Origin: Marsupella aquatica
Lineage: Eukaryota > Plantae > Marchantiophyta
DNA length: 64,000 nt
Assembly: GCA_973895155.1 (NCBI GenBank)
Contig: OZ316897.1
Coordinates: forward strand, 10,253,832-10,317,831
Reading direction: 5' to 3'
A program made the position numbers and the translations under genes. The notes under the pieces are model-generated. The model did not search any database, was not told the origin of the DNA, and saw nothing but the letters and a program-made list of their open reading frames with translations. This document shows positions 8,025 through 57,932 of the stretch, one piece after another. Each line of letters starts with the position of its first letter. Positions within the stretch are counted from its first letter, which is position 1.

Positions 8025-8170
8025 TATGATGAGTAAGCTTCTATTTTCCGGCGGTGCAATGGGACTCTGACGAAAAATAGGTCAATCCACGCGTGTACCG
8101 TTGTTCCTATGGACTGATCGAACAAGTAGAAGGATGTACCGTTGATATCTATTATTCATTGCACACCTTA

Positions 8171-8244
8171 CGCATCCTACAGGATTTGAACCTGTGACCT
8201 TCAACTTAGAAGGTTGTTGCTCTATCCAACTGAGCTAAGAATGC
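8171..8244 (-). tRNA. trnR: tRNA-Arg(UCU)
   Basis: Reverse complement GCATTCTTAGCTCAGTTGGATAGAGCAACAACCTTCTAAGTTG...GGTTCAAATCCTGTAGGATGCG. Anticodon TCT. Confidence 0.95.
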
Positions 8245-8448
8245 GGCACATTACTAACCATTTCGCAAAAAAAAAGTGAATTCCAGAGAAGAAAGAAGCT
8301 TGCTTCTTTCTCCTCTCCCGCTTTATTCGCATCGCGAATGGAGGCCGAAAGGAGGGAAAGGGTCCGATGGAATAAAACAAACAAAAAATATTTTTTTTTG
8401 CTTTGCGTTTTCCTGGTTTTGATCAGGTTCAACACATGACGAAATATA

Positions 8449-9295: not shown

Positions 9296-14212
<4,917 letters not shown>

Positions 14213-21682: not shown

Positions 21683-22669
21683 ATGAAAATTTATCTAATT
21701 GGTCTTGTCGCTAAGATACTTGGAATTATAATACCCCTGTTATTGGGCGTCGCGTTCTTAGTACTAGCAGAACGAAAAGTCATGGCGTCTATGCAAAGGA
21801 GAAAAGGACCGAACGTAGTCGGCATTTTGGGACTGTTGCAACCTTTAGCAGATGGTTTGAAGCTCATGATGAAAGAGCCAATTTTGCCTAGTAGCGCGAA
21901 TATTTTTATTTTTCTAATGGCACCCGTTCTGACGTTTACACTGGCTTTGTGCGCTTGGGCTGTCATCCCCTTCGATTATGGTATGGTTTTTTCAGATCTA
22001 AATGTTGGGGTTTTGTATCTATTTGCGATATCTTCACTCGGAGTGTATGGAATTATTACGGCAGGCTGGGCAAGTAACTCCAAGTATGCTTTTTTGGGAG
22101 CATTACGATCTGCCGCTCAAATGGTTTCCTACGAAGTTTCCATAGGATTGCTTCTGATATCCGTCATACTATGCGCAGGTTCCTGCAATTTTAGCGAGAT
22201 TGTTCTAGCGCAAACACGGATATGGTTTGTTTTTCCCTTGTTTCCTGTGTTTCTCATGTTTTTCATTTCTTGTTTAGCAGAAACAAATCGAGCTCCTTTC
22301 GATCTACCAGAGGCCGAGGCAGAACTCGTGGCGGGCTACAATGTGGAATATTCTGCTATGGGGTTTGCTCTTTTCTTTCTGGGGGAGTATGCTAATATGA
22401 TCTTAATGAGTAGTCTCTGTACATTGCTTTTCCTAGGAGGTTGGCTGCCCATCCTGGATATTCCTATTTTCCGGGTAATTCCGGGCTCTATCTGGTTCAG
22501 TATAAAGGTTCTTTTCCTCTCGTTTGTATATATATGGGTCCGCGCAGCATTTCCACGATATCGTTATGATCAATTAATGAGACTTGGCTGGAAAGTATTC
22601 TTGCCTTTATCATTAGCATGGGTAGTCTTTGTATCTGGTGTTCTAGTAGCCTTCGAATGGCTCCCTTGA
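21683..22669 (+). CDS. nad1: NADH dehydrogenase subunit 1 (intronless, 328 aa)
   Basis: [40 protein letters not shown] and PRYRYDQLM. Confidence 0.97.
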
Positions 22670-34700: not shown

Positions 34701-35235
34701 CAAGAAGAGGGCAGGCCTGTGACTCTCGATGATTAGATTCTACAACGAAAAAGATTGGGGGTGGGAGCCGTATGAACGGTAACGTTCACGTACGGTTCTG
34801 TGAGAAGGGTTGGGAACGGAAATGGCCCCATTCCCTTACTCTCGATGGTATTTCTTACCAGTCTATGCGATTCCTCGAAGTATACCTAACAAATTAGGGG
34901 GTGTAGCCGCCATAGGACTAGTTTTTGTGTCATTATTGGCTCTACCTTTCATTAACACTTCATATGTACGTAGTTCAAGTTTTCGACCAATTCACCAAAA
35001 ATTGTTTCGGTTGCTTGTAGCAGATCGCTTGCTTTTAGGTTGGATTGGATGTCAACCCGTGGAAGCACCATATGTTACTATTGGACAAATTGCTTCAGTG
35101 GGTTTTTTCTTCTATTTTGCTATAACGCCCATTCTTGGCAAATGTGAAGCCAGATCAATCAAAAATTTTAATGCTTGCGAGGCGCGTAGCGTCCTAGCAA
35201 GCTTTCTCACTTCTATTGGCTTGCTTCGGTGGTGA
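28703..35235 (+). CDS. cob: Apocytochrome b; exons 28703-29074, 30520-30930, 31826-31866, 34845-35235 (1215 nt)
   Basis: [42 protein letters not shown] and [25 protein letters not shown] after splicing. Confidence 0.95.
29075..30519 (+). mobile_element. Group II intron cobi372g2
   Basis: GTGCG after nt 372. Domain V aagccacatgcgggaaaacttgcacgtgtggttc at ~30456-30489. Ends AT. Confidence 0.9.
30931..31825 (+). mobile_element. Group II intron cobi783g2
   Basis: GGGCG after nt 783. Domain V gagagccgtgtgatgggcgactatcttgtacggttcgg at ~31715-31752. Ends ctctat. Confidence 0.9.
31867..34732 (+). CDS. Intron-encoded maturase of cobi824g2 (RT-X-HNH endonuclease), in frame with cob exon 3
   Basis: [53 protein letters not shown]-terminal EMHHIR...[13 protein letters not shown]-type domain. 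Confidence 0.9.
31867..34844 (+). mobile_element. Group II intron cobi824g2 with maturase ORF
   Basis: Starts GCGCG after nt 824. Domain V gagccgtatgaacggtaacgttcacgtacggttc at ~34765-34798. Restoring GA|A TGG (PEWY) sets the 3' end. Confidence 0.85.
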
Positions 35236-36249: not shown

Positions 36250-38360
36250 ATGAAAAACAAATATATAACTATCTACCGGTTTTGCGAAAAAAGAAAGATA
36301 CGATTTATGGATAACCAATTGTTTTTCAAATCTCTAATAGCTACTTCACCGAAAAGGACATATAAATGTCGAACGGTATCTAAAGCACCTGAAAACTGCG
36401 CGAAGATGCCCAAGAGCATCCAATTCCGAGCATTCGGTGGAACCGGTGAACCATTTGTACGTTTGGATTTACGAATGGGGCAGAGGGCCTTTAGCTATGA
36501 AAGGCAAAGGACAAGGGCCTTTCTAAGCTTCAGCTCTCCCCGCCCCGGTGGAAGAGGAGGTTCGGCTTGGACCGAGCGTCTTCGTGCCCTCTGGAAACAC
36601 TGTCAGAAAGAGCAGTTCAAGGCAGAAGGCCTGTTTCGGCTCATGAAAGACATAAATCTGTGGATAGCGGCCTATAAGAAGCTGTCACCAGGCTCTAAGA
36701 ACGGTGGTGAAAGACCGAAAGGCACCTTGATCAAAGCACTAGAAACACTGAGAGACTCTGTGATAAACGGGGGGAGCCCTACGGGCCGCCGCCAGAGTTG
36801 GCCCAAGGGGCACGAGACTCGAGGGACAAGGGGCAAAGCCCTGGGTCCGGAGGGTACGAAGGATACTTCTTTGGCTTTGCGAAGGAAGAGCCGAAGACCG
36901 GAAATGGATCGTATATTTCTGCACACTTCTTTGCCCCGTGTCCCGCCGCGGACCCACAAAGTGTCTCGTGCCCTTCGGGTCGTAGATCCTTCAGACGCTT
37001 CTTTAGCTTCACGGCGGGGGCTTACCCGGAAGGACAAAGATATACTGGTACAGGAAGTGATTCGCAGCATCCCAGAGACGGTTTACGAACCGTACTTCCT
37101 TCCGTGTTCTCATGGATTTCGACCGGGCCGCTCCCAACATACCTGCTTGAAGCAGATACGCCGTGACTTCGTGGGTACCGTTTGGTTCGTAGAAGGTGAA
37201 ACGCAATGCTTCAATAAAATAGATAAGCAAGTGCTTATAGGCCTCATGCGGCGAAAAATTCGAGACAACAGATTCTTGAACCTGGTTCAAAAGGAGCTAG
37301 AAACGAGCCTAAGGGCGGTAGGAGCCGAGGTCGCCATCACGGCCAAAGGGGGGGGGGGGTTGCCCCCCTTCTATGCAACATAGTGCTGCATGAGCTAGAC
37401 CTTTTTGTTATGCGATTGAAACGTATCGTTGACAGGGGGCAGCGTTGGGCAGTCAATCTGGAGTCCAAGGAATTGTGGCGTCAATCTGCGCTGGCTCTAA
37501 TCGACCGCACTCCGGTACACATAGCCAGGGTGACCTCCCGGGGGGGGACCGCCGAAGGCACCCCCCCCGGCCACCCGCAAGAAACCCGGCAAATAAACTA
37601 TGTGCGCTTCGCAGATGATTTTCTCATTGGAGTCATTGGTCCAAGAGCTCTGGCGGAAAGGATACGCAGCTTGGTTACACGATTTATTGAAGTGCGGCTC
37701 AAGCTCAGCCTGGATAAGACCCGTGAATCCATTCAATCTCGCTCGAACACGCTACCCGCGCACTACGTGCCTATGGGTCCGGAGGAGGCATGGCCGCCGA
37801 AGGCCGGAAATAACTTTACAATTTCCGCACACGCGGCTACGGGGAAAAGTAAGAAACAAATTTTTTGCATAAGGGGTGGAGCAAAGAAGATTGCTTTCCT
37901 TGGATACCTTATTAGTCGCGATTCGACCTACCTTAGACGGGGACGTAGGTACGGAATACGTAGATATGGTGGGCTTAGTTTACTCGTAGATATGCGGAAA
38001 GTTATAAACCGTCTGGCGGAGAAGGGATTTTGTGATAAATCGGGTCACCCAAAACCTAATTTTGCTTACTTTCAGTATCCCCAAACCTACTCGGTTGCCC
38101 GCATGGCTTCCATTCTACGCGGCCTTGCCAACTATTACCATCTTGCGAACTCCAAACGCCGATGTGTCACACGCTTGAGCTACATACTACGTACGTCATT
38201 GGCCAAAACATATGCCGCCAAATTCAAACTAGGCACAGCAGCTAAGGTTTTTGCCAAGGGCGGCAGGGACCTTTCAAAACCAATTAAGGCTAGGAAGGGC
38301 CTCAACAAGGTCCCCAGGGTGTCCAATCGGGGGGGGGGGGGGGGGCGGGGAGTGTACTAG
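36250..38360 (+). pseudogene. rtl: Free-standing group II RT/maturase-like gene (rtl), frameshifted at G12 (37348-37359) and cut at the junction
   Basis: DILVQEV, SHGFRPGRSQH, then APLLCNIVLHELD in the shifted frame, YVRFADDFLIG and X domain ILRGLANYY...YAAKFKL. Lies downstream of cob as in liverwort mtDNA. Confidence 0.8.
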
Positions 38361-39345: not shown

Positions 39346-40801
39346 TCACTGCACCTTGTACATAAAGTTGGCGACGGCCAAGTTTTGCTGTAACTCCGCC
39401 ATAACCGCTGCGCCATTCTTGGACGTTACGATAGGGTGCTTCTCCGGGTCTGTGTTGGCCTCCTCAGTCCCTCTCCTCTCCTCATCCTCTGCAGTGGTTC
39501 CTGTTGCCTGCTCATCCTTCCAGCCCAACTCTTTGGCTCGAGCTTCCCACAACGCAGCATTTTTCTTCTCTGCTGCGAGCAATTCCTCGGCTTTCTCTCG
39601 GGCTCCCTCGCTGGTCTCCATGCCAGAGTTACATTTCTCGAACTCTTTCTGAAACTGAGAGGCAATTTTCTTGGCTTCCAGCAACGCTCCGTCTGATTTG
39701 GCCTTGTCCTCTTCTGCCACTTGCTTTTGTACCTTCATCTCCTCTTGAAGCTTTTGATACCTAGTTTTCTGAAGCTCATCTTCCATGTCCCCATCCACCT
39801 TGGGGCATGCTGATCAACACACAACACACAACATGGTCAGGAGGACTGCTACACTTTACCTCTTCGACTTCACGGGTTTTTACAATGGGAGGCATCACAA
39901 GAGCACCAGAACTATATTTCAGCGGTGACCCCAACGGCAAGATGACACCGTAACTTCCATCCCCGAGTCACCATTTCCTCCTAATTCTCACATCCCAATT
40001 CCATCAAAAAAGGTGATCTCTCAGTACACATCCATACTGTGCAACTGCCGAACGAAAGGTAGACAATGTTGCTCAGGAAAGGAATCTGGAGCCTGGCGGT
40101 GGGCTAGAGAGTGTCTGCCTAAGTTCTTTGCGACAAGGATCAAGATTTATTCGTTCCCGATCTGCTGAGGATATCCGGAGACACACCTGGAAGAGTAATG
40201 TTGTGGAGGTCTGCATTTATATCAGTCCACGATCACACGCAAGAAAGTGTTATTAACTCTCACGGGCGAGCAAAGGATCCAGACCTAACTCACAGAAACT
40301 TCCACAAATCAACAGAAAAGGCATACTAGGAAAGCAGCTATCGCGAGATGATGCTGCTTCTATAGACGCCGCCCGAATTCCCATCCATCCTCCCTCTCTT
40401 CCCATGGACGAGTCGGACTAACCACACTGGTACACTTTTTTGCCAGTCCAGAGACCAGTGGTGGAATGGATCTCCCAATCAATCAATCAATCAATCCAGT
40501 ACACACACAAACCTCATGCAATGCTATGCAAATAAACTTCGGACAAACGAATTCTTTGGAACAGATCAGAGAAAACAAATAGACTGATCCGAATGTAAGG
40601 GAGTGTGGTTCGTTTACCAGAGATGGCAGCCTTCGTTGCAATATCGTCAGGGCACTCTGTGTTACAAGGAGGGCACGACCCGCCCGACCCATCGCCAACG
40701 AAATGCCAGTATAACGGAGGCCCAACAATGTACGCGCAAAACCCGAAGGACAGCACCAGGATAAGCAGCTTCACTCCTGAAATGCTCGTGTACTGAGCCA
40801 T
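39346..40801 (-). CDS. Nuclear DUF1068-family protein; exons 40801-40618 and 39809-39346 (215 aa)
   Basis: N-terminal TM then YIVGPPLYW..SCPPC.C. Also LLEAKKIASQFQKEFEKCNSGMETSEGAREKAE...WEARAKELGW. A phase-1 GT-AG intron (40617-39810) joins the exons in frame. Confidence 0.85.
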
Positions 40802-42300: not shown

Positions 42301-43864
42301 TACCTTATGCACAGTATGGGCTCCCATACCATCATCGCACACAAGCATTGTTTAAATACAGAAAATTGTTGCTGAACAAGTGAAACTAGCCCCTGCTACC
42401 CGTTTGTTGAAAGTGAATAGACATGAGTACAATACACTGTTGACAAAATATATTCCCTAGTGTAATAGAATAATGTATCAAAACAGAAAATGAAACCCAA
42501 CTTGAGAGATTTCTCCATCAAGAGTAAGGTCCAACATACAAAGTTTCATGGCTAAAATTAGTGGAGCAAGGGTGAGGAAACCGAAACAACTGAATTTAAA
42601 CCAAACTAGCCCGATGACCCATTCCTTGAACATAAATAGATATGAAAGAAAATCTTGCACAATACAATTTACTATTTTGATTAGTTTTGACTCACCCTTG
42701 TTTTTGGTCCAATTTTGTCTTTATTTAGACTCAATGTCACTTTTGTCCATCCTCATTATATATATCATAGTGCCCAAAGGCAGAGAACGCCTAACCGGTA
42801 GACAAGAGCTCATTTAAAATGTTGACCTTATTGAACCTCATTATCAGTTTGTCTATATTGGGAGTTATAGTCTAGAGGCTTTGCTCTAGACCTAGGCCCT
42901 TAAGAGTAGACTTTGGTTGGTGCTTTATAATAAGATTGCAATGCAATTTACCAAACACTTACAGTTTCTTGATGCCCCAATTCCCATTTCCTCTGGGTCA
43001 TACTCTTGTTATGTTCCATTCCTTCTTTTGATAGTTGTAAGAAAAGAAATTAGTATTTTGCTTGTATTCTAAATTTTGTTGGTGTGCACATGAGGCATGG
43101 ATTAGCTGTATCATAAAACCTCCAAAAACTCACCCCACCCGATCCACTTTCTTACTCGCACCCTACATTTTGATTCATGCCCCCTTAGATCGATGAAAAC
43201 CAAAAAAATCTTTGCCAAAATAATAATTCTACCATGTTTCCCTTTCATCTTTGCCCCATCTTTTTGTCCACCATACTTTCAGTTTTGTCTTTACTAAAAG
43301 TCATTGTGGAGTCATTGTGAGCTTTGAAATGATGATAGAAACTATGGTACATATCATCATTTTAACATACATAATTCTCTCCATGCACATCCTTTTTTCC
43401 TTGCACATGAATTTTGGTGGAGCCCTACCTGCACATACATTTGGGGGCTGGGGTGGGGGGCGGGCTAGAGTCACGGTCTAGAGGCTTCACTCTAGTAGCC
43501 TAGACCCCAACTCTAGCTTCCCTTTGCACTTTATAATTAAGATGACATGTCAATGGCTTCCTTCCCTGGAGTAAGTCATGTGTGGTACACTTTGATTACC
43601 AAATGTAATATGGATGATATCAAATTTTGGTAGACATCAATGTCTAGGCTTTTTTCCCTTTTCTCCCAAGCAAATTGTATCCCTTACAAGTATATGTTGT
43701 TTCAATTTTGCCCTTTCCAGCATTAATGTTTTTAGTGTTGAGTAAAGACAACATTCACAATGACAAGCCCATGATAGATCATCCAACGCACAAGTAGTCG
43801 ATACAAAGAGATACATGGTTCATCTCAAGTGAGACTACATTCACGCAAGAACTTTATTGCATTC

Positions 43865-44339
43865 TGTTGGGTATTTACTCTTACGTCTAGGTTAGGTATG
43901 ACGTGGTTGGTACAACAACGTGGGTTGGTACAACTACGTGGTTAGGTACAACTACGTGATTAGGTACAACTATGTGGTTAGGTACAACTACGTGATTAGG
44001 TACAACTATGTGGTTAGGTACAACTACGTGATTAGGTACAACTATGTGGTTAGGTACAACTATGTGGTTAGGTACAACTAAGTTGCACACTATATCATAA
44101 GAGGCATGTGTGCTTGGAGAGGTAGAACCAAGGCTCATTGTTATGGAGCCACTTGAGAGATAGGGAGAGCTTACACTGTGGAGACTCGGTATAGCCGACG
44201 GGCTTAGAGTTCAGTAAAGCTCTCTTGTGTGTTCCCGTGGACGTAGCCTCAAGGAGGTGAACCACGTATCTCTTGTGTCGACTATTGTGCGTTGGATGGT
44301 TCATGGGCTTGCCGTTGCGATCGTCGTCTATGCTCAACA
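43865..44339 (+). repeat. LTR 1 (475 bp)
   Basis: tgttgggtatttactc...ctatgctcaaca, followed by the PBS. Confidence 0.95.
43901..44080 (+). repeat. Ten-copy 18-bp tandem repeat in LTR U3 (also in LTR2 and LTR3)
   Basis: ggtacaac recurs every 18 nt from 43909 to 44071. Unit gtg(g/a)ttaggtacaacta(c/t). Confidence 0.92.
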
Positions 44340-44341
44340 AT

Positions 44342-44353
44342 TGGTATCAGAGC
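44342..44353 (+). promoter_or_regulatory. Primer binding site, tRNA-iMet (second copy at 49710-49721)
   Basis: TGGTATCAGAGC 2 nt after the LTR end. Confidence 0.93.
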
Positions 44354-44910
44354 ATGCTTGGGAGGTGACGTGTGTTCGTGACGGGATTTCATGACGGTTT
44401 TTCCAGCGTTGAGTGTTGGTGGATTTTCCAGAGTTCCATCGCATGGAACTTGGAGTTTATGGGCTCAACGGATAGATCAGGGCAAGAGCTTTCTAACGGT
44501 GTGAAGAAATCGTTGAACGGAGCTCGTGGTGCAGAGAGATCTAAGTTTTCGTCGTTCTGGATTTTGTGAAGAAAGTTGGCAATCGACTCGGAGGGAGAAG
44601 CGTCAAGTGTTTTGACTCAACGGAAAGATTGAGGCAAGACGATTGTTTTTGAGTCCGGGATTGGCTCTTTGATGCAAAGAGGAAGGCTAAGCAAAATCAA
44701 TTACCTTGTTGGACTTGGTGACGGCACCAAGTGCAATTGATCAACATTCGTTGTTGACAAGACGTGGAACTTGAAGCACGAGGATCACCGCGGAGGTTTC
44801 AGGGGCAGAGAGAGGAGCAGGAGGAAGAGCACGTGACACCGATACCATCACTGGTGCGGCGTGTGGTGGAGGAAGCAGTACTACTACCGGAGCTCACGGT
44901 AAAGAAGAAG

Positions 44911-45768
44911 ATGGGGACTTTCAAGCTTGGGGGACCCAAGTATGAAGTGACAAAGTATGATGGGCGCTCTGACTACTTGCTATGGGAGAAGCAGGTGAAG
45001 GGAGTGCTTTATGCGTCAGGGATAGGCCAACTGCTGAGCCCTCGTGAAGACGATGTTGATGAGAAACAATGGGACCGCATGCAGGAGCAGGGAGTGTGGT
45101 GTGTTACACTCTATCTCATGCCTCCCATCATCAAGCAGTTAGGTGCACATAAGGATTGCATGTCCTTGTTTGCGGAATTGCAGAGCAAGTATCACCGCAA
45201 GGAGTTGTCGAACCGGCTCTACACTTCCTACAAACTGATGAGTTTCAGGATGAAGGAATCTGGTACAAAGTTGCAAGACCATGTGGATGCTTTCAACGAC
45301 ATGGTCGTTGACTTGGAAAACCTTGGGGAGACTTTGAATGATGAGACGAAGGCTCTGCAGCTTCTTAGTTCATTGCCTCCATCTTACCAGTCCCTATCAC
45401 GAGTGTTGTTGCATCGTGATAGGGATACCATTTCATACAATGACGTGGTAAGTTCTCTACTTAGTGATGATCTTCAGCAGAAGATGCACATCACGTCACA
45501 GCCTTCATCATCTGGTGCTGCCCTCAATGTTAACCGTGGGAGGAGTATGCAGCGACCAACTAGGGACCGTAGAACCCAGTTTAGATCTAAATCCATATCT
45601 AAGTCCAAGGGTAAATCCCCTCAGAGGAGGCAGGTGACATGTTGGAAGTGCAACCAAGTTGGACACTTCAAGCGAGACTGTAAGGGAAAGGCAGCGGAAA
45701 CTTCATCGGCAAATGTGGCTAGGGCTGATGGAGAAGCTGATTTACTCAATGATGAGTATGTTTTATGA
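44911..45768 (+). CDS. gag: Copia Gag, unit 1 (first in-frame ATG at 44911)
   Basis: KYEVTKYDG..DYLLW, LLSSLPPSY and zinc knuckle CWKCNQVGHFKRDC. Ends TGA. Confidence 0.9.
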   Translation: MGTFKLGGPKYEVTKYDGRSDYLLWEKQVKGVLYASGIGQLLSPREDDVDEKQWDRMQEQGVWCVTLYLMPPIIKQLGAHKDCMSLFAELQSKYHRKELSNRLYTSYKLMSFRMKESGTKLQDHVDAFNDMVVDLENLGETLNDETKALQLLSSLPPSYQSLSRVLLHRDRDTISYNDVVSSLLSDDLQQKMHITSQPSSSGAALNVNRGRSMQRPTRDRRTQFRSKSISKSKGKSPQRRQVTCWKCNQVGHFKRDCKGKAAETSSANVARADGEADLLNDEYVL

Positions 45769-48700
45769 AGCCGGGGGTATGCCCTGTGCACGTCATCTAG
45801 GAGAGCAGATGATGTGTGGATTCTTGATTGTGCTTGCTCTTTTCATATTTGTTACATTCGTGAGTTTTTCAGTTCTTACTCTGTTTCAAACGGTTCAGTT
45901 CTGATGGGAAATGATCACTCCTGTCAAATTGAGGGAATTGGGTCTGTGAAGATTCAAATGTTTGATGGGGCTGTGCGCATAGTGTCCGGAGTCAGGTATG
46001 TACCTGGCATGCGTAAGAATCTGATTTCACTCGGTGTGTTGGATTCAAATGGTCATCAATGGAGCGTTATTGATGGTGAACTTCAAGTTAGGTCGGGAGA
46101 GACAGTGATTTTGAAGGGGAGTAGACAAAAGAATTTGTATGTGTTACAGGGCAATACTGTATGTGAAGAGGCCAATGTAACCAAGTCTCACGAGGAGATG
46201 ACTCAACTGTGGCATTCACGGCTAGGCCACATGAGTGAGAAGGGTTTGGCTATCTTACGGAAGAATGGACTCATTTCTGATTTGCAATCTTGTAAATTAA
46301 AGTTTTGTGAGCATTGCATTCTTGGAAAGCAGCATCGTCGTGCTTTTGGTGTTGGAACTCATCGTTCCAAAGCGGTTCTTGAGTACATACATAGTGACGT
46401 GTGGGGTCCATCCCCGACTCCCTCACACTCTGGAAAGTTGTACTATGTATCATTTATTGATGATTACTCAAGATTTGTGTGGATTTATTTCATGACGCAT
46501 AAGTCTGATGTCTTGTCCATTTTTAAGAAGTGGAAGGCCCAGGTGGAGAATCAGACTGGAAACACGATCAAGTGTTTCGATACAAGGGTGAAGAGTCTGA
46601 GGTCAGACAACGGCGGGGAGTACACTTCAATGGAATTTGAAGAGTACTGTTCAGAACAGGGGATAACTCGCCATCTCACCATAGTTTATACTCCGCAGCA
46701 GAATGGTATCGTTGAGAGGCTCAATCGGACACTGTTGGAGCGGTCACGGAGTATGTTGAGCCAATCAGGTTTACCACAAGAATTTTGGGCAGAAGCTGTC
46801 AATACCGCAGCTTATTTGGTAAATCTTTCTCCTTCTAGTGCTATCAATTTCAAAACGCCGTTTGAGATGCGCTATAAGCGGCAAGCAGACTATCATGGCT
46901 TGGTAATTTTTGGAAGTGATGCATATGCTCTCACACCAAAGCAGAATAGGACCAAGTTGGATCCTACCTCCAGGAAATGTGTTTTTCTTGGGTACCAGAG
47001 TGGTGTGAAAGCCTATAGGCTATGGGATCCTATTGCCTGTAAGCTCGTTGTCAGTAGGGATGTTTCCTTCAATGAATCCAGATTATTGAAGGAGGGGGAG
47101 AATACTCAGGTCTCCCGTACTGACAAAAGAAAATCTCCTATCCCGGATCTCGTTGAGGGGGAGATTGGTTATGAGGTGCATGACCGGAGAGAAGGAGTTG
47201 CTCCAATTATGGAGCTGGTTCCTGTGCCAGAGGAACCAGAGGAGTTTGTTGATGCTGGTGAGCAGCAAGTGGATGCTGTTGAGCTTCAAATTGTACCAGC
47301 ACACGCAGATCAACCGGAGTCATCGGCTAGAAGAACATCTGGTCGCACTGTACGCGCTCCATCAAGGTATGGACAGTGGGTTGATTCATCTCAACTGCAA
47401 GAGGATGATTTTACAGCTGATGATGAGGGTGATGCGTTAATTTTGGAAGAAGGAGAACCTTCTTCATTTCATGAGGCAAGTGCTTCAAAGGAGAAGCAAA
47501 AGTGGACTGCAGCAATGCAAACAGAGATGCAGTCACTAAAGGACAACAAAACTTGGGAGCTTGTTAAGCTGCCTAAGGGTCAGCAAGTGGTGGACAGCAA
47601 GTGGATTTACAAGCTGAAGGATAATTCCATAGGAGGTGGATCGAAGGTCTACAAGGCTAGATTGGTAGCAAAGGGATTCACACAAGAGAAAGGTGTGGAT
47701 TACAATGAGGTCTTCTCACCAGTTGCTAAGTACTCTACAATACGACTATTGTGTGTACTTGTTGTAATGTTTGGTCTGCTCCTAGATCAGATGGATGTTG
47801 TCACAGCTTTCCTCTATGGCACATTGGAAGAGGTGATCTTCATGAGACAACCGCTAGGTTTTGTGAAGAGAGGACAGGAGGAATTGGTTTGCAGATTGCT
47901 GAAATCCTTGTATGGGTTGAAGCAGTCACCAAGACAGTGGAACAAGCGGTTTGACGATTGGATTCGGTCACAAGGTTTTCACAGAAGTGTATTTGACCCT
48001 TGTGTGTATTTGAAACCGGTGAAGAATGTTGTCTTTGGGTTCATTGTTTTAGTACTTTATGTGGATGACATGCTAATTGCAGCCAAGGATAGGTCTGAGA
48101 TTGTTAAGCTCAAGGCACTGCTTAGTGCAGAGTTTAAGATGAAGGACTTAGGGCCAGCTAAGAGGATTTTGGGTATGGAGATCACTAGGGACTTGGAGGC
48201 TGGCAAGCTATGGTTGACGCAGAGCAGTTATGCGAGGAAGGTAATTGCAAGGTTCAACATGGAGAATAGCAAGCCAGTAAGTACCCCGTTGGCTCCACAC
48301 TTCAAGTTATCATCAGCGTTCTGTCCTACGGATGACACAGAGAAGGGGTTGATGTCAAAGGTTCCATATGACAAGGCAGTGGGGAGTCTCATGTATTTGA
48401 TGACTTGCACTAGACCTGATCTTGCCATGGCTATGGGCAAGGTGAGCAGGTACATGTCGAATCCAGGGAAGGTACACTGGGAAGCAGTGAAGTGGATTAT
48501 CAGGTACTTGAAGGGTACCGTGGATCATGGTCTTTTATTTGATGCGAATGCAAAGAATGCTAGATCATTGATTGGCTATGTAGATTCTGACTATGGACAA
48601 GATTTGGACCGAAGGAGATCAACAACAGGATACGTGTTCACACTTGGCGGTGGATGCATAAGTTGGAGGTCTACTTTGCAGAAGTGTATTGCTCAGTCTA

Positions 48701-49041
48701 CTACAGAAGCGGAGTATGTTGCAGCTGCGGAAGCAGCAAAGGAAGCGATTTGGTTGGATAGACTTATCACTGAAATGGGATTGCCACAGGGGAATGTGAA
48801 GCTCCATTGTGATAGTCAAAGTGCGCTCCACCTTGCTGTGAACCAGGTGATGGACAGCAGAGTGAAGCACATTGACGTCAGGTACCATTTTATCAGGCAG
48901 GCTGTGTCTGATAAATTGTTTGAGCTAGTCAAGATTGATGGTAAACTCAACCCGGCTGACGCATTTACCAAAGTGATTCCTTTGGAGAGTTTCTCTAGAC
49001 ACCGTGACGTATTGCAGGTTTTGCAATTGCATCACAAGTAG
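45769..49041 (+). CDS. pol: Copia Pol (protease-integrase-RT-RNase H), unit 1; same frame as gag, open directly after the gag TGA
   Basis: WILDCACSFH, WHSRLGH..CEHC, IHSDVWG, LRSDNGGEY, YKARLVAKG, SLYGLKQSPRQW, LYVDDML and KHIDVRYHFIR. Confidence 0.93.
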   Translation, partial: SRGYALCTSSRRADDVWILDCACSFHICYIREFFSSYSVSNGSVLMGNDHSCQIEGIGSVKIQMFDGAVRIVSGVRYVPGMRKNLISLGVLDSNGHQWSVIDGELQVRSGETVILKGSRQKNLYVLQGNTVCEEANVTKSHEEMTQLWHSRLGHMSEKGLAILRKNGLISDLQSCKLKFCEHCILGKQHRRAFGVGTHRSKAVLEYIHSDVWGPSPTPSHSGKLYYVSFIDDYSRFVWIYFMTHKSDVLSIFKKWKAQVENQTGNTIKCFDTRVKSLRSDNGGEYTSMEFEEYCSEQGITRHLTIVYTPQQNGIVERLNRTLLERSRSMLSQSGLPQEFWAEAVNTAAYLVNLSPSSAINFKTPFEMRYKRQADYHGLVIFGSDAYALTPKQNRTKLDPTSRKCVFLGYQSGVKAYRLWDPIACKLVVSRDVSFNESRLLKEGENTQVSRTDKRKSPIPDLVEGEIGYEVHDRREGVAPIMELVPVPEEPEEFVDAGEQQVDAVELQIVPAHADQPESSARRTSGRTVRAPSRYGQWVDSSQLQEDDFTADDEGDALILEEGEPSSFHEASASKEKQKWTAAMQTEMQSLKDNKTWELVKLPKGQQVVDSKWIYKLKDNSIGGGSKVYKARLVAKGFTQEKGVDYNEVFSPVAKYSTIRLLCVLVVMFGLLLDQMDVVTAFLYGTLEEVIFMRQPLGFVKRGQEELVCRLLKSLYGLKQSPRQWNKRFDDWIRSQGFHRSVFDPCVYLKPVKNVVFGFIVLVLYVDDMLIAAKDRSEIVKLKALLSAEFKMKDLGPAKRILGMEITRDLEAGKLWLTQSSYARKVIARFNMENSKPVSTPLAPHFKLSSAFCPTDDTEKGLMSKVPYDKAVGSLMYLMTCTRPDLAMAMGKVSRYMSNPGKVHWEAVKWIIRYLKGTVDHGLLFDANAKNARSLIGYVDSDYGQDLDRRRSTTGYVFTLGGGCISWRSTLQKCIAQSTTEAEYVAAAEAAKEAIWLDRLITEMGLPQGNVKLHCDSQSALHLAVNQVMDSRVKHIDVRYHFIRQAVSDKLFELVKIDGKLNPADAFTKVIPLESFSRHRDVLQVLQLHHK

Positions 49042-49216
49042 AGTTTTCTTAAACATTCATTGTAATTACTGATATATGCTCTTCCTCATTCCTATGTATT
49101 AGGCTACGGCTTAGTTCTGGTTTGCTCTAGTTAGAGAGGGAAACCGGTTTGGTTTCTGTCCAGAACTTCCCGCTGAGGGATCATATACATTGGCAGTATT
49201 ACTCTCCCCTAGACCA

Positions 49217-49232
49217 GAGTCAAGGGGAAGAT
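49217..49232 (+). promoter_or_regulatory. Polypurine tract (second copy at 54585-54600)
   Basis: gagtcaaggggaagat immediately 5' of LTR2 and LTR3. Confidence 0.8.
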
Positions 49233-49707
49233 TGTTGGGTATTTACTCTTACGTCTAGGTTAGGTATGACGTGGTTGGTACAACAACGTGGGTTGGTACA
49301 ACTACGTGGTTAGGTACAACTACGTGATTAGGTACAACTATGTGGTTAGGTACAACTACGTGATTAGGTACAACTATGTGGTTAGGTACAACTACGTGAT
49401 TAGGTACAACTATGTGGTTAGGTACAACTATGTGGTTAGGTACAACTAAGTTGCACACTATATCATAAGAGGCATGTGTGCTTGGAGAGGTAGAACCAAG
49501 GCTCATTGTTATGGAGCCACTTGAGAGATAGGGAGAGCTTACACTGTGGAGACTCGGTATAGCCGACGGGCTTAGAGTTCAGTAAAGCTCTCTTGTGTGT
49601 TCCCGTGGACGTAGCCTCAAGGAGGTGAACCACGTATCTCTTGTGTCGACTATTGTGCGTTGGATGGTTCATGGGCTTGCCGTTGCGATCGTCGTCTATG
49701 CTCAACA
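49233..49707 (+). repeat. LTR 2 (shared internal LTR)
   Basis: Same sequence as LTR1. Preceded by the PPT and followed by the PBS. Confidence 0.95.
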
Positions 49708-50278
49708 ATTGGTATCAGAGCATGCTTGGGAGGTGACGTGTGTTCGTGACGGGATTTCATGACGGTTTTTCCAGCGTTGAGTGTTGGTGGATTTTCCAGA
49801 GTTCCATCGCATGGAACTTGGAGTTTATGGGCTCAACGGATAGATCAGGGCAAGAGCTTTCTAACGGTGTGAAGAAATCGTTGAACGGAGCTCGTGGTGC
49901 AGAGAGATCTAAGTTTTCGTCGTTCTGGATTTTGTGAAGAAAGTTGGCAATCGACTCGGAGGGAGAAGCGTCAAGTGTTTTGACTCAACGGAAAGATTGA
50001 GGCAAGACGATTGTTTTTGAGTCCGGGATTGGCTCTTTGATGCAAAGAGGAAGGCTAAGCAAAATCAATTACCTTGTTGGACTTGGTGACGGCACCAAGT
50101 GCAATTGATCAACATTCGTTGTTGACAAGACGTGGAACTTGAAGCACGAGGATCACCGCGGAGGTTTCAGGGGCAGAGAGAGGAGCAGGAGGAAGAGCAC
50201 GTGACACCGATACCATCACTGGTGCGGCGTGTGGTGGAGGAAGCAGTACTACTACCGGAGCTCACGGTAAAGAAGAAG

Positions 50279-51136
50279 ATGGGGACTTTCAAGCTTGGGG
50301 GACCCAAGTATGAAGTGACAAAGTATGATGGGCGCTCTGACTACTTGCTATGGGAGAAGCAGGTGAAGGGAGTGCTTTATGCGTCAGGGATAGGCCAACT
50401 GCTGAGCCCTCGTGAAGACGATGTTGATGAGAAACAATGGGACCGCATGCAGGAGCAGGGAGTGTGGTGTGTTACACTCTATCTCATGCCTCCCATCATC
50501 AAGCAGTTAGGTGCACATAAGGATTGCATGTCCTTGTTTGCGGAATTGCAGAGCAAGTATCACCGCAAGGAGTTGTCGAACCGGCTCTACACTTCCTACA
50601 AACTGATGAGTTTCAGGATGAAGGAATCTGGTACAAAGTTGCAAGACCATGTGGATGCTTTCAACGACATGGTCGTTGACTTGGAAAACCTTGGGGAGAC
50701 TTTGAATGATGAGACGAAGGCTCTGCAGCTTCTTAGTTCATTGCCTCCATCTTACCAGTCCCTATCACGAGTGTTGTTGCATCGTGATAGGGATACCATT
50801 TCATACAATGACGTGGTAAGTTCTCTACTTAGTGATGATCTTCAGCAGAAGATGCACATCACGTCACAGCCTTCATCATCTGGTGCTGCCCTCAATGTTA
50901 ACCGTGGGAGGAGTATGCAGCGACCAACTAGGGACCGTAGAACCCAGTTTAGATCTAAATCCATATCTAAGTCCAAGGGTAAATCCCCTCAGAGGAGGCA
51001 GGTGACATGTTGGAAGTGCAACCAAGTTGGACACTTCAAGCGAGACTGTAAGGGAAAGGCAGCGGAAACTTCATCGGCAAATGTGGCTAGGGCTGATGGA
51101 GAAGCTGATTTACTCAATGATGAGTATGTTTTATGA
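50279..51136 (+). CDS. gag: Copia Gag, unit 2
   Basis: Translation identical to unit 1. Confidence 0.9.
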   Translation: MGTFKLGGPKYEVTKYDGRSDYLLWEKQVKGVLYASGIGQLLSPREDDVDEKQWDRMQEQGVWCVTLYLMPPIIKQLGAHKDCMSLFAELQSKYHRKELSNRLYTSYKLMSFRMKESGTKLQDHVDAFNDMVVDLENLGETLNDETKALQLLSSLPPSYQSLSRVLLHRDRDTISYNDVVSSLLSDDLQQKMHITSQPSSSGAALNVNRGRSMQRPTRDRRTQFRSKSISKSKGKSPQRRQVTCWKCNQVGHFKRDCKGKAAETSSANVARADGEADLLNDEYVL

Positions 51137-54100
51137 AGCCGGGGGTATGCCCTGTGCACGTCATCTAGGAGAGCAGATGATGTGTGGATTCTTGATTGTG
51201 CTTGCTCTTTTCATATTTGTTACATTCGTGAGTTTTTCAGTTCTTACTCTATTTCAAACGGTTCAGTTCTGATGGGAAATGATCACTCCTGTCAAATTGA
51301 GGGAATTGGGTCTGTGAAGATTCAAATGTTTGATGGGGCTGTGCGCATAGTGTCCGGAGTCAGGTATGTACCTGGCATGCGTAAGAATCTGATTTCACTC
51401 GGTGTGTTGGATTCAAATGGTCATCAATGGAGCGTTATTGATGGTGAACTTCAAGTTAGGTCGGGAGAGACAGTGATTTTGAAGGGGAGTAGACAAAAGA
51501 ATTTGTATGTGTTACAGGGCAATACTGTATGTGAAGAGGCCAATGTAACCAAGTCTCACGAGGAGATGACTCAACTGTGGCATTCACGGCTAGGCCACAT
51601 GAGTGAGAAGGGTTTGGCTATCTTACGGAAGAATGGACTCATTTCTGATTTGCAATCTTGTAAATTAAAGTTTTGTGAGCATTGCATTCTTGGAAAGCAG
51701 CATCGTCGTGCTTTTGGTGTTGGAACTCATCGTTCCAAAGCGGTTCTTGAGTACATACATAGTGACGTGTGGGGTCCATCCCCGACTCCCTCACACTCTG
51801 GAAAGTTGTACTATGTATCATTTATTGATGATTACTCAAGATTTGTGTGGATTTATTTCATGACGCATAAGTCTGATGTCTTGTCCATTTTTAAGAAGTG
51901 GAAGGCCCAGGTGGAGAATCAGACTGGAAACACGATCAAGTGTTTCGATACAAGGGTGAAGAGTCTGAGGTCAGACAACGGCGGGGAGTACACTTCAATG
52001 GAATTTGAAGAGTACTGTTCAGAACAGGGGATAACTCGCCATCTCACCATAGTTTATACTCCGCAGCAGAATGGTATCGTTGAGAGGCTCAATCGGACAC
52101 TGTTGGAGCGGTCACGGAGTATGTTGAGCCAATCAGGTTTACCACAAGAATTTTGGGCAGAAGCTGTCAATACCGCAGCTTATTTGGTAAATCTTTCTCC
52201 TTCTAGTGCTATCAATTTCAAAACGCCGTTTGAGATGCGCTATAAGCGGCAAGCAGACTATCATGGCTTGGTAATTTTTGGAAGTGATGCATATGCTCTC
52301 ACACCAAAGCAGAATAGGACCAAGTTGGATCCTACCTCCAGGAAATGTGTTTTTCTTGGGTACCAGAGTGGTGTGAAAGCCTATAGGCTATGGGATCCTA
52401 TTGCCTGTAAGCTCGTTGTCAGTAGGGATGTTTCCTTCAATGAATCCAGATTATTGAAGGAGGGGGAGAATACTCAGGTCTCCCGTACTGACAAAAGAAA
52501 ATCTCCTATCCCGGATCTCGTTGAGGGGGAGATTGGTTATGAGGTGCATGACCGGAGAGAAGGAGTTGCTCCAATTATGGAGCTGGTTCCTGTGCCAGAG
52601 GAACCAGAGGAGTTTGTTGATGCTGGTGAGCAGCAAGTGGATGCTGTTGAGCTTCAAATTGTACCAGCACACGCAGATCAACCGGAGTCATCGGCTAGAA
52701 GAACATCTGGTCGCACTGTACGCGCTCCATCAAGGTATGGACAGTGGGTTGATTCATCTCAACTGCAAGAGGATGATTTTACAGCTGATGATGAGGGTGA
52801 TGCGTTAATTTTGGAAGAAGGAGAACCTTCTTCATTTCATGAGGCAAGTGCTTCAAAGGAGAAGCAAAAGTGGACTGCAGCAATGCAAACAGAGATGCAG
52901 TCACTAAAGGACAACAAAACTTGGGAGCTTGTTAAGCTGCCTAAGGGTCAGCAAGTGGTGGACAGCAAGTGGATTTACAAGCTGAAGGATAATTCCATAG
53001 GAGGTGGATCGAAGGTCTACAAGGCTAGATTGGTAGCAAAGGGATTCACACAAGAGAAAGGTGTGGATTACAATGAGGTCTTCTCACCAGTTGCTAAGTA
53101 CTCTACAATACGACTATTGTGTGTACTTGTTGTAATGTTTGGTCTGCTCCTAGATCAGATGGATGTTGTCACAGCTTTCCTCTATGGCACATTGGAAGAG
53201 GTGATCTTCATGAGACAACCGCTAGGTTTTGTGAAGAGAGGACAGGAGGAATTGGTTTGCAGATTGCTGAAATCCTTGTATGGGTTGAAGCAGTCACCAA
53301 GACAGTGGAACAAGCGGTTTGACGATTGGATTCGGTCACAAGGTTTTCACAGAAGTGTATTTGACCCTTGTGTGTATTTGAAACCGGTGAAGAATGTTGT
53401 CTTTGGGTTCATTGTTTTAGTACTTTATGTGGATGACATGCTAATTGCAGCCAAGGATAGGTCTGAGATTGTTAAGCTCAAGGCACTGCTTAGTGCAGAG
53501 TTTAAGATGAAGGACTTAGGGCCAGCTAAGAGGATTTTGGGTATGGAGATCACTAGGGACTTGGAGGCTGGCAAGCTATGGTTGACGCAGAGCAGTTATG
53601 CGAGGAAGGTAATTGCAAGGTTCAACATGGAGAATAGCAAGCCAGTAAGTACCCCGTTGGCTCCACACTTCAAGTTATCATCAGCGTTCTGTCCTACGGA
53701 TGACACAGAGAAGGGGTTGATGTCAAAGGTTCCATATGACAAGGCAGTGGGGAGTCTCATGTATTTGATGACTTGCACTAGACCTGATCTTGCCATGGCT
53801 ATGGGCAAGGTGAGCAGGTACATGTCGAATCCAGGGAAGGTACACTGGGAAGCAGTGAAGTGGATTATCAGGTACTTGAAGGGTACCGTGGATCATGGTC
53901 TTTTATTTGATGCGAATGCAAAGAATGCTAGATCATTGATTGGCTATGTAGATTCTGACTATGGACAAGATTTGGACCGAAGGAGATCAACAACAGGATA
54001 CGTGTTCACACTTGGCGGTGGATGCATAAGTTGGAGGTCTACTTTGCAGAAGTGTATTGCTCAGTCTACTACAGAAGCGGAGTATGTTGCAGCTGCGGAA

Positions 54101-54409
54101 GCAGCAAAGGAAGCGATTTGGTTGGATAGACTTATCACTGAAATGGGATTGCCACAGGGGAATGTGAAGCTCCATTGTGATAGTCAAAGTGCGCTCCACC
54201 TTGCTGTGAACCAGGTGATGGACAGCAGAGTGAAGCACATTGACGTCAGGTACCATTTTATCAGGCAGGCTGTGTCTGATAAATTGTTTGAGCTAGTCAA
54301 GATTGATGGTAAACTCAACCCGGCTGACGCATTTACCAAAGTGATTCCTTTGGAGAGTTTCTCTAGACACCGTGACGTATTGCAGGTTTTGCAATTGCAT
54401 CACAAGTAG
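51137..54409 (+). CDS. pol: Copia Pol, unit 2
   Basis: Translation identical to unit 1 except V>I (G45883 versus A51251). Confidence 0.93.
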   Translation, partial: SRGYALCTSSRRADDVWILDCACSFHICYIREFFSSYSISNGSVLMGNDHSCQIEGIGSVKIQMFDGAVRIVSGVRYVPGMRKNLISLGVLDSNGHQWSVIDGELQVRSGETVILKGSRQKNLYVLQGNTVCEEANVTKSHEEMTQLWHSRLGHMSEKGLAILRKNGLISDLQSCKLKFCEHCILGKQHRRAFGVGTHRSKAVLEYIHSDVWGPSPTPSHSGKLYYVSFIDDYSRFVWIYFMTHKSDVLSIFKKWKAQVENQTGNTIKCFDTRVKSLRSDNGGEYTSMEFEEYCSEQGITRHLTIVYTPQQNGIVERLNRTLLERSRSMLSQSGLPQEFWAEAVNTAAYLVNLSPSSAINFKTPFEMRYKRQADYHGLVIFGSDAYALTPKQNRTKLDPTSRKCVFLGYQSGVKAYRLWDPIACKLVVSRDVSFNESRLLKEGENTQVSRTDKRKSPIPDLVEGEIGYEVHDRREGVAPIMELVPVPEEPEEFVDAGEQQVDAVELQIVPAHADQPESSARRTSGRTVRAPSRYGQWVDSSQLQEDDFTADDEGDALILEEGEPSSFHEASASKEKQKWTAAMQTEMQSLKDNKTWELVKLPKGQQVVDSKWIYKLKDNSIGGGSKVYKARLVAKGFTQEKGVDYNEVFSPVAKYSTIRLLCVLVVMFGLLLDQMDVVTAFLYGTLEEVIFMRQPLGFVKRGQEELVCRLLKSLYGLKQSPRQWNKRFDDWIRSQGFHRSVFDPCVYLKPVKNVVFGFIVLVLYVDDMLIAAKDRSEIVKLKALLSAEFKMKDLGPAKRILGMEITRDLEAGKLWLTQSSYARKVIARFNMENSKPVSTPLAPHFKLSSAFCPTDDTEKGLMSKVPYDKAVGSLMYLMTCTRPDLAMAMGKVSRYMSNPGKVHWEAVKWIIRYLKGTVDHGLLFDANAKNARSLIGYVDSDYGQDLDRRRSTTGYVFTLGGGCISWRSTLQKCIAQSTTEAEYVAAAEAAKEAIWLDRLITEMGLPQGNVKLHCDSQSALHLAVNQVMDSRVKHIDVRYHFIRQAVSDKLFELVKIDGKLNPADAFTKVIPLESFSRHRDVLQVLQLHHK

Positions 54410-54600
54410 AGTTTTCTTAAACATTCATTGTAATTACTGATATATGCTCTTCCTCATTCCTATGTATTAGGCTACGGCTTAGTTCTGGTTTGCTCTAGTT
54501 AGAGAGGGAAACCGGTTTGGTTTCTGTCCAGAACTTCCCGCTGAGGGATCATATACATTGGCAGTATTACTCTCCCCTAGACCAGAGTCAAGGGGAAGAT

Positions 54601-55075
54601 TGTTGGGTATTTACTCTTACGTCTAGGTTAGGTATGACGTGGTTGGTACAACAACGTGGGTTGGTACAACTACGTGGTTAGGTACAACTACGTGATTAGG
54701 TACAACTATGTGGTTAGGTACAACTACGTGATTAGGTACAACTATGTGGTTAGGTACAACTACGTGATTAGGTACAACTATGTGGTTAGGTACAACTATG
54801 TGGTTAGGTACAACTAAGTTGCACACTATATCATAAGAGGCATGTGTGCTTGGAGAGGTAGAACCAAGGCTCATTGTTATGGAGCCACTTGAGAGATAGG
54901 GAGAGCTTACACTGTGGAGACTCGGTATAGCCGACGGGCTTAGAGTTCAGTAAAGCTCTCTTGTGTGTTCCCGTGGACGTAGCCTCAAGGAGGTGAACCA
55001 CGTATCTCTTGTGTCGACTATTGTGCGTTGGATGGTTCATGGGCTTGCCGTTGCGATCGTCGTCTATGCTCAACA
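54601..55075 (+). repeat. LTR 3
   Basis: Same sequence as LTR1. Followed by CATTC. Confidence 0.95.
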
Positions 55076-57932
55076 CATTCTAGGCCCACCGGCCATACCA
55101 AGACTCCACAATACAAGTTCCCCCCATCTCTCAACTGGCTCCGTAACAAGGAACCTAAGTTCCCGTTATCTAAGTAAACACTACTTTGGGATACAATGTG
55201 CAACATGACTAACCTAAACAAATCCGCGACTAAGGTTAGCCCTAACTATGGTTACAATTGTAACTATATACTTAAGAATAAATGCCTAGCATTTAGTTCT
55301 TAAACATTATTTGTTATTTGACGCTTTTCCTTTGTATAGATAAATCCATTTTTCTTGGATGTTCTTTGACATAATTGTTTTTACTTTGTGTGATGAGTAC
55401 ATTCATGAAATCATGTCATCTATCGAGCATATTCCCCAGCGTGTTCAAGCTCTATGGTAGATTATAGATCACTTGTAGTACTGTTCTTCTTTTCTCAATC
55501 AATTCTTCCTTCAATCATTCTTGTTCATGGTTTTATAGTATGGTTGACTCAACAAAGTGAAGTCAATTGTAGTGAGATCTCAAAATTGAAACCTGTATTT
55601 GAGGTCGCACTATATTCCTACTAAAATACTAAAACCTATATTTTAGCCTAAAATACTAGAACCAGATTATTGGTAATGAACAAGCAACACTATAGAGCTG
55701 GGATAGTACAGAGTATTGTAGGAGTAAGGGTGAAAGAATGGTCACTCTAGTCAAAGAGGAGGTATAGAAGAAGATTCATTCAATCTTCATGTGACCAAAG
55801 CACTGACAACCTTGGATGCTTATGTGATTGATTAATAGTTACAAGGTCCTAGTGATCTTCCTTCCAAACCAAGCTTGATCTGTCTTCATTACAAACTTTT
55901 TTTCTCGTATATGTTTTCTAAGTTTCCATGGAAGTCTCAAAATCTATGCTTTGGAAGATTACCTTGTATCTATATAGCACTTTCCTTTCATAAATGCTAA
56001 ACCTTTTCTCGTATCTAAAGGTGTTTAGTAGCACTTTCCTTGCATCAATCTCACCTGTTTGGTCCAGGGGGAGTCTCAAGATTGAATTTTATGGTCCATC
56101 CAAGCATCAAAATCAGAAACCAAATGATGAAGAAGAAACAAACAGAAAAAATATAGAAACAAAGAAGGAAGTAAGCCATGGAGATGATACATCAGATGTT
56201 ACAGCCCATCCAAGCATCAACCTCAGACACAAACATATGTATATCACATTATCAAAGAACAACAGTTCCAAACCTGGAGACAAGATTCCTAATGGGGAAG
56301 GTCTAATAAAGAGGAAAAAACAATGAAAAACCTAGGGAAGACTGCAAAGCCCTGAAGTCCCACACAACAACAAAATAACTAAAGCCCTACCACCAAAGCC
56401 AAAATTAGTCACACACAATAGCAGAAACTAAAACCCTACTCAACAATAAACTGAATAGGCTAGTAAAGCCTATGAATGAATGACCACAAAAAGAAAAGAA
56501 ACAAGGAATGAAATGACCTACTGAATGACCTAATGATGACACTAGCTTCACTCCGGTGAAACTGGAATGGGGAGTGAGAGTGATAAGTTTGAGAGGATTG
56601 CAATGTGAGGCATAAGAATGAAGGTCTCAGGCCGTTATACACAGCATTTTACACTTTTCTAAGTGTGAACTTTGTTCCTTGTGAATGTATAGTTTCATCA
56701 TGTTTTCAAGGTTATGTATCTCAAGGGCTGGAAAGTTTGCTACCCTTGCCCTTGGTTATCCATCACATATGCACTCAGACCTACATACGGAGGAGGTCGA
56801 GGCATAAAAATCTCAGTCAATGTTGGAATGTCACCCCTTCACTTGAGGGCCACAAATTAGAAGTACTGTCCACATGCTACAACCATTCAGGCTCGATTCC
56901 AGTATCTAAACAACGGCTGTTGGAGAGGGTAAGATTAAGTGTGGGTCTTGCCTTGTGCGTATGAATGAAACAATCCAAAGGAAACCACCCTACTACTTAG
57001 TTTTTTTTTTTGTCCTGAACTGAAATGGGGAGGAAATACAATTAGACTCTCCCCACCCCAATGTGACACTTTTTCTGTAGGGAACCCAGACCAGGGTGAG
57101 CCTAAGCCCCAACGGATCTGACAGGGACCCACACCAGGAAAGAGAGAGGATTAAATCAGGGCCACAAAATGGGCAACCAGGTCCGAGTAGATAATCAGAA
57201 CTCCAATGCACTATGCACAAAACCCATCCCACCCACACACATAAACCCTCCACACCCCGGTGTGTGGAGGGGGAATTGAACTTGGGCTAATCCCTAGCCA
57301 ATTGACCTAAGCCAATTGGTTTAGGGTACTACTTAATTCTGAGCCCCCCCTAACTCTGAAAGAAACCACAGTACTACGTATTCTGAGTACCACGTATTTT
57401 GAGTACCACGTAATTATGAATTCTACGTATTTCTCAGTACGTAGAACACCTACGGGGCTCTCTACGGCCTTCCCCATGCCTGGGCTCCCTCCCGTTACCC
57501 TTTTTACTCGTTAGAGGCAGTGCAAGGCAACAGGAGAGCGGAGACGAGAGGAGACGAGAGGAGTCGAGAGGAGTCATCGGAGGAGACATCAGATTCGCGA
57601 TTGAATGAGCAAATCTCATTCGGAGTGCCTATCGCGGATGTCGAATCCTGCACGATTAGCGTGGGAGTGCACTCGCGACTGTTCGGTCGCAGATGTGCGC
57701 TCATCCGAGTCGTGGACGGATTGAAGAAGCTGCCTGAGAGGAGGATTCGTCGAGGCGGGAAAATTGAGAAACGGAGGTTCTCTGTGGCGACGTGCGTTTC
57801 GGGAGAGAGAGAGAGAGTGAGTGAGGTTTTAGGGGTCGGGATGATGGGACGAGGATTACCGTAGTACGAGGAACGGGAGATTGTTGAGCCTTGCCCCTGT
57901 TCGGGCTGAGAGGCGAGGAGGGAGTAGGAATT

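Follow-up and report, generated by a model that had tools for sequence, protein, structure and literature searches.

A conserved in-frame UGA between gag and pol in a clade of liverwort Ty1/copia retrotransposons, a probable site of translational readthrough

Several strategies are known for the expression of gag and pol in retroelements. Ty1 and human immunodeficiency virus (HIV) use frameshifting, and Tca2 and murine leukaemia virus (MuLV) have a stop codon between the two genes (Oberlin et al., PMC5580714). In Moloney MuLV, termination at an in-frame stop at the gag/protease boundary yields Gag and rare readthrough yields Gag-Pol (PMC5580714, PMC2194720), while in Tca2 (pCal) of Candida albicans the pol proteins are made from the full-length gag-UGA-pol RNA, and hence the stop is bypassed (Forbes et al., PMC2194720). 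Plant copia elements have been viewed as single open reading frame (ORF) elements that rely on splicing for additional Gag and are unable to use translational recoding (PMC5580714, citing Gao et al. 2003), and most plant lineages have one ORF (Neumann et al., PMC6317226). Here we describe a Ty1/copia element of the liverwort Marsupella aquatica that lies in a stretch of 64,000 nucleotides (contig OZ316897.1, positions 10,253,832 to 10,317,831 of the forward strand; hereafter the window, whose own numbering is used throughout). Comparison of its sequence with those of its relatives places it in a plant copia clade with the gag-stop-pol layout of the gammaretroviruses and Tca2. The words liverwort and Marchantia do not occur in the text of the plant long terminal repeat (LTR) survey (PMC6317226), and literature searches on liverwort or Marchantia copia elements with a stop between gag and pol returned no paper describing the clade or its UGA.

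The element is present as two tandem units, the first of which contains the following features around the junction.

44911–45768, + strand: gag of unit 1, 285 codons (counted from its first ATG) and the TGA, with Retrotran_gag_2 and zf-CCHC
45766–45768, + strand: in-frame TGA between gag and pol; all 11 elements compared have TGA at the homologous codon
45769–45816, + strand: linker of 16 codons from the TGA to the protease Trp codon, with protein-level constraint
45769–49041, + strand: pol of unit 1, in the order protease, integrase, reverse transcriptase and RNase H, 1090 open codons ending in TAG

Read directly from the sequence, the 3′ end of gag is GAT GAG TAT GTT TTA TGA, with the TGA at positions 45766–45768. 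The frame downstream of it remains open for 1090 codons until it is closed by a TAG at 49039–49041, a length behind one stop that is far beyond chance. Gag and pol therefore share one frame and exactly one stop codon separates them, as the original prediction for this locus had described; the sequence matches that description letter for letter. Pfam places Retrotran_gag_2 and zf-CCHC upstream of the TGA and, in order, Pol_BBD (the protease, from residue 17), gag_pre-integrs, rve, SH3_retrovirus and RVT_2 downstream of it. The TGA is thus situated in the linker that joins the nucleocapsid knuckle to the protease, 27 codons 3′ of the knuckle and 16 codons 5′ of the Trp of the W-I-L-D protease motif. 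The protease motif at 45826–45834 reads L-D-C-A-C-S in the window element and its closest kin, L084 and L090, and L-D-S-A or L-D-S-G in other members of the clade; the catalytic Asp is kept in the L-D-C-A-C-S form and the adjoining residue is unusual.

To follow the TGA across the family, gag and pol were used as separate queries, and the stop was read as X in the alignment scripts. The pol query retrieved two close partial relatives (76% and 65% identity), beyond which came single-ORF Gag-Pol proteins of seed plants that are ~50% identical. The gag query retrieved 45 proteins, including annotated proteins of Calypogeia fissa and Marchantia polymorpha. Thirty-one gag ORFs continue beyond the zinc knuckle. 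Of these, 25 stop at the homologous position, their last residues being D-L-L-x-D-x-Y-[AV]-L or a similar sequence, and the count becomes 26 when P0141, whose stop is confirmed by the DNA of L093, is included. DNA was available for 11 elements (the window element, L001, L002, L084–L087 and L090–L093), and all 11, including those of C. fissa and M. polymorpha, have TGA at the homologous codon with pol continuing in frame. The original prediction had considered that most copies of the family might carry a sense codon at this position; the outcome was the opposite, as none of these 11 elements does. Past the TGA, pol is open for 1090 codons in the window element, 1080 in the Calypogeia element L085 and 1078 in L087, which are three separate members. 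The sequence immediately around the stop varies at the same time. The Leu codon at position −1 is TTA, TTG or CTA, the Val, Ala or Ile codon before it takes six forms, the codon after the TGA follows the pattern NGY (AGC, AGT, TGC or CGC), and Leu +6 and Thr +8 are each encoded by four synonymous codons. A decayed copy from M. polymorpha (L086, LVLJ01003355.1) carries a second, private TGA at 7504–7506, 13 codons further on, where its sister L091 has AGA; this second TGA shows what genuine nonsense damage looks like.

In a maximum-likelihood tree of the first 330 Pol residues, obtained with a quick search setting, the seven TGA-bearing elements tested form one clade (Shimodaira–Hasegawa-like approximate likelihood ratio test, SH-aLRT, 100) among 51 single-ORF relatives. 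The control consisted of 39 distant copia loci, with knuckle and protease in one frame, from a metagenome locus scan with the gag alignment, which yielded distant copia lineages only (~28% identity). Thirty-three of them have no stop in the linker and six have one stop each; these stops are scattered, and sister copies carry sense codons in their place. A 53% identical relative outside the clade (L003; JGI Ga0654501_0033414, 1–120) has sense codons throughout the homologous linker and a stop, attributable to ordinary nonsense mutation, in place of the protease-motif Trp. Because the two named hosts represent two liverwort classes, Jungermanniopsida (Calypogeia) and Marchantiopsida (Marchantia), the trait is either old or has moved between them.

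The proportion of synonymous differences (pS) between lineages of the clade is 0.62–0.72, which is near saturation, and an unselected triplet would therefore not have stayed TGA in every lineage. The ratio of nonsynonymous to synonymous differences (pN/pS) is 0.54 over the 16-codon linker that follows the TGA and 0.32 within its codons +4 to +10, compared with 0.35–0.37 for gag and 0.28–0.34 for the protease; these low values past the TGA argue that the codons there are translated in frame 0. The first in-frame ATG past the TGA lies beyond the catalytic Asp motif of the protease in 10 of 10 elements, so that internal initiation would be unable to give a working protease. As pol is constrained and the protease has no upstream start of its own, the ribosome would have to pass the UGA in frame. 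Taken at the level of comparative sequence, these data suggest that pol is expressed and under selection, and that the TGA is almost certainly a selected, clade-wide feature. In the clade elements examined, pol itself is terminated by TAG or TAA and never by TGA.

We consider programmed UGA readthrough, guided by a non-canonical signal, to be the probable route by which the stop is bypassed to give Gag-Pol. It is the simplest fit because gag and pol are in the same frame, the codons on both sides of the stop are constrained, only UGA is used at the junction and the pol terminators are TAG or TAA. UGA readthrough had been named as an alternative in the original prediction, and the comparative evidence, with TGA in 11 of 11 elements and a constrained in-frame pol, now appears to favour it. 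Termination at the UGA would give Gag as the default and abundant product, and in a small fraction of ribosomes a near-cognate tRNA would read the UGA and translation would go on in the same frame, producing Gag-Pol with protease, integrase and reverse transcriptase. The Gag:Pol ratio would then be set by translation, as in gammaretroviruses, rather than by the spliced gag-only RNA of flowering-plant copia elements. Readthrough of this kind would be of low efficiency and might be helped by hairpins downstream of the stop.

The described systems each share part of this arrangement. Tca2 resembles the liverwort elements in belonging to the Ty1/copia superfamily and in having gag and pol in one frame with a single UGA, but it is a single family in a fungal host with a proposed MuLV-like pseudoknot, whereas the liverwort elements form a diverged clade in which no pseudoknot was found. 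Moloney MuLV shares the in-frame stop at the gag/protease boundary and, if the liverwort stop is read through as proposed, the division of products; it differs in superfamily and domain order, and has UAG followed by G with a pseudoknot ~8 nt downstream. The liverwort clade, in contrast, always has UGA followed by A, U or C, and at most simple hairpins at 3–5 and 19–22 nt (8 nt only in L002). Flowering-plant copia elements of the EVD, BARE1 and Tnt1 type have in common with the clade the superfamily, domain order, gag and Pol Pfam families, 5-bp target duplication and type of primer binding site (PBS) sequence, and their Pol is ~50% identical. They differ in having one continuous Gag-Pol ORF, with extra Gag made from spliced, prematurely terminated RNA (PMC5580714), whereas the liverwort clade has a conserved stop, no conserved intron found to span it and Gag as the presumed default product. 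Plant-virus UGA readthrough takes place in a plant host at the same stop codon, and the likely decoders are near-cognate tRNAs for Trp, Cys and Arg (PMC2194720), but the type II signal has CGG or CUA after the UGA where the liverwort clade has AGC, AGT, TGC or CGC.

The region downstream of the stop contains two putative RNA structures in the window element.

45772–45786, + strand: candidate hairpin 1, 5 bp, 3 nt past the TGA and weak; 2–5 bp in relatives (hand count)
45788–45817, + strand: candidate hairpin 2, 11 bp with an 8-nt loop, the end of its 3′ arm being in the Trp codon; seen again in 7 of 8 lineages

The Thr-Ser-Ser codons contain the 5′ arm of hairpin 2, and its 3′ arm runs through the Asp-Asp codons into the Trp codon. 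The cells of this hairpin are 78% paired, against 16–58% in slid controls, and in the most divergent member, L002, it has 13 bp and starts 8 nt past the stop. In 9 of 11 elements, the sequence downstream of the stop has a better fold than its synonymous-codon shuffles (z = −3.3 for the window element and −3.4 for L002), and our own combination of the scores over 8 lineages gives z of about −3.4. Compared with dinucleotide shuffles, the 141 nt tested in the window element gave z = −0.6, which is not significant, and RNAalifold on the junction alignment returned a weak consensus of −12 kcal/mol with a covariation term of ~0. The downstream hairpins are thus weakly supported candidates from structure modelling.

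Several observations weigh against readthrough. The base after the UGA is A in seven elements, U in three and C in one, and the known leaky contexts (UGA-CGG, UGA-CUA, UAG-CAA-UUA and a stop followed by G plus a pseudoknot, a list drawn in part from PMC2194720) are absent from all 11. Hairpin 2 begins 19–22 nt past the stop in most members, beyond the ~8 nt of MuLV-type signals, and its covariation is not significant, with double changes in two pairs and an equal result in 60 of 500 shuffles. A pseudoknot partner for the hairpin 2 loop was sought downstream, where pairing was no better than in shuffles, and the synonymous rate near the stop is not depressed. Finally, the junction of Tca2, the sole copia-type precedent, gives no readthrough on its own in yeast (PMC2194720).

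The strongest alternative to readthrough is an RNA-level bypass, in which a minority of transcripts lose or skip the conserved UGA, either through another conserved splice or through a separate or subgenomic pol mRNA in the style of foamy viruses. Plant copia and Ogre elements do set their Gag:Pol ratio by splicing (PMC5580714, PMC6317226), the bypass in Tca2 is unexplained (PMC2194720), and the immediate context of the liverwort UGA is not a known leaky one. However, among alignment columns conserved in at least 7 of 10 sequences there is no plausible frame-keeping GT...AG pair that spans the stop; each of the conserved combinations either has no acceptor in three lineages or would cost the element its knuckle or its protease active site. 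The protein-level constraint in frame 0 on the 16 codons past the UGA and the lack of an in-frame ATG ahead of the protease Asp also speak against it, and we regard an RNA-level route as improbable, with a modest chance of being correct.

A specific form of splicing was the headline of the original prediction, in which a 45-nt GT-AG micro-intron (45756–45800) is removed from some transcripts, deleting the TGA and fusing gag to pol. The geometry of the segment is as it had been given, since GTATGT starts at 45756, TCTAG ends at 45800 and the removal of the 45 nt keeps the frame, and the same holds in the closest kin, L084 and L090. These two and the window element are the only ones with both splice signals. 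Of the 10 sequences in the codon-guided alignment, four have the GT donor and three the AG acceptor, and the elements of Calypogeia and Marchantia and L087, L001 and L002 lack one or both signals, while the TGA is kept in all of them. Working plant introns are longer and more AU-rich than this segment, which has 51% G+C and lies within sequence constrained as protein. The micro-intron is accordingly not borne out, and we give it hardly any credence.

The remaining suggestion of the original prediction was a plain nonsense mutation, carried by a defective copy that intact relatives have mobilised in trans. It would suit a single stop in an otherwise intact young element and has parallels in the scattered stops of other copia lineages (6 of 39), but it is rejected as exceedingly improbable, since the TGA is fixed at the homologous codon in 11 of 11 diverged elements from at least two liverwort classes, with intact pol frames, its bearers form one clade, synonymous sites are near saturation and no member with a sense codon was found.

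Three other explanations for an in-frame UGA were considered and ruled out. An Rfam scan of 38–64 kb of the window revealed no selenocysteine insertion sequence (SECIS) or other Rfam family near the element, which excludes selenocysteine recoding, and land plants are not known to possess the selenocysteine machinery. Organelle-type RNA editing of the UGA is excluded by the nuclear context, with an adjoining DUF1068 gene, and a variant genetic code by the ordinary TAG or TAA at the end of pol.

If programmed readthrough is the bypass, a broader proposal can be made. An ancient liverwort Ty1/copia clade spanning Marchantiopsida and Jungermanniopsida may have exchanged the single-ORF-plus-splicing strategy for UGA readthrough with an undescribed signal (YUR UGA NGY, with position +4 being A or U and a pseudoknot lacking); we advance this full version tentatively, as possible but rather less than an even bet. 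If it is true, the signal would represent a new class of eukaryotic readthrough signal that is testable in M. polymorpha. A selected gag-UGA-pol clade would show a second, translation-based solution within land plants, and, as a readthrough substrate that is naturally present in many copies, it would be accessible in Marchantia, a genetically tractable group. The non-canonical stop context could reveal an undescribed readthrough determinant. The clade also has a bearing on annotation: its elements are not dead copies, and at present gene callers split them into "gag-only" and "pol-only" proteins.

The locus as a whole has the tandem structure LTR-internal-LTR-internal-LTR, and its features outside the unit 1 junction are as follows.

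43860–43864, + strand: 5′ target-site duplication CATTC, repeated behind LTR 3
43865–44339, + strand: LTR 1, 475 bp, the same sequence as LTR 2 and LTR 3; 18-bp tandem repeats in the 5′ part
44342–44353, + strand: primer binding site TGGTATCAGAGC, placed by its sequence position behind LTR 1
49222–49231, + strand: polypurine tract ahead of LTR 2, in the sequence preceding 49233
49233–49707, + strand: LTR 2, common to both units, from the self-comparison
50279–51136, + strand: gag of unit 2, with its TGA at 51134–51136
51137–54409, + strand: pol of unit 2, with one Val to Ile difference from unit 1, from the self-comparison
54601–55075, + strand: LTR 3, from the self-comparison
55076–55080, + strand: 3′ target-site duplication CATTC, the same five bases as at 43860–43864

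Self-comparison of the window matched 43865–49707 to 49233–55075 (offset 5368), with one mismatch in 5843 bp (45883 G versus 51251 A, which changes Val to Ile). The three LTRs, starting at 43865, 49233 and 54601, are 475 bp each, identical and bounded by TG...CA, and the 5-bp duplication CATTC occurs on the two outer flanks only, before LTR 1 and after LTR 3. The PBS TGGTATCAGAGC, which we take to match the 3′ end of the initiator tRNA-Met, occurs behind both LTR 1 and LTR 2; LTR 2 and LTR 3 each have a purine tract in front of them. The Pfam domain order of gag, protease, integrase and reverse transcriptase/RNase H is that of Ty1/copia. The locus is a Ty1/copia (Pseudoviridae) LTR retrotransposon that represents one insertion, tandemly duplicated, and it is extremely young because the two internal regions differ only at 45883/51251. 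The array would have originated either from unequal LTR recombination right after insertion or from integration of a concatemer, and might possibly be an assembly artefact. The original prediction had pointed to the same layout in unit 2, and the TGA is indeed present at 51134–51136, but it adds no independent support because unit 2 is a tandem copy with one base different.

The window from position 1 to ~38 kb (38400) consists of mitochondrial-type DNA with nine matches to group II introns (domain V/VI). It contains tatC (8449–9195), a cox2 exon fused to an intron maturase ORF (10675–13173), an unsplit nad1 (21683–22669), further maturase ORFs (31838–34732 and 37383–38360) and the genes for tRNA-Tyr (trnY) and tRNA-Arg (trnR) at 7942–8245. 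This stretch is probably a large nuclear insertion of mitochondrial DNA (NUMT) because it adjoins a nuclear gene, and possibly an assembly join. The nuclear gene is a two-exon DUF1068 gene on the minus strand (39346–40801), whose second exon is 82% identical to its best match, a C. fissa protein, which points to a leafy liverwort host distinct from C. fissa. The copia element sits in nuclear DNA beside this large mitochondrial insert.

Two further observations concern the LTRs. About a dozen 18-bp tandem repeats of the GGTTAGGTACAACTACGT type occupy 43883–44100 and the equivalent part of LTR 2 and LTR 3, and these may be enhancer-like U3 repeats. An inverted fragment on the minus strand (43736–43845), located 20 bp upstream of LTR 1, is 79% identical to the last 104 bp of the LTR and is a remnant of an older related element at the insertion site.

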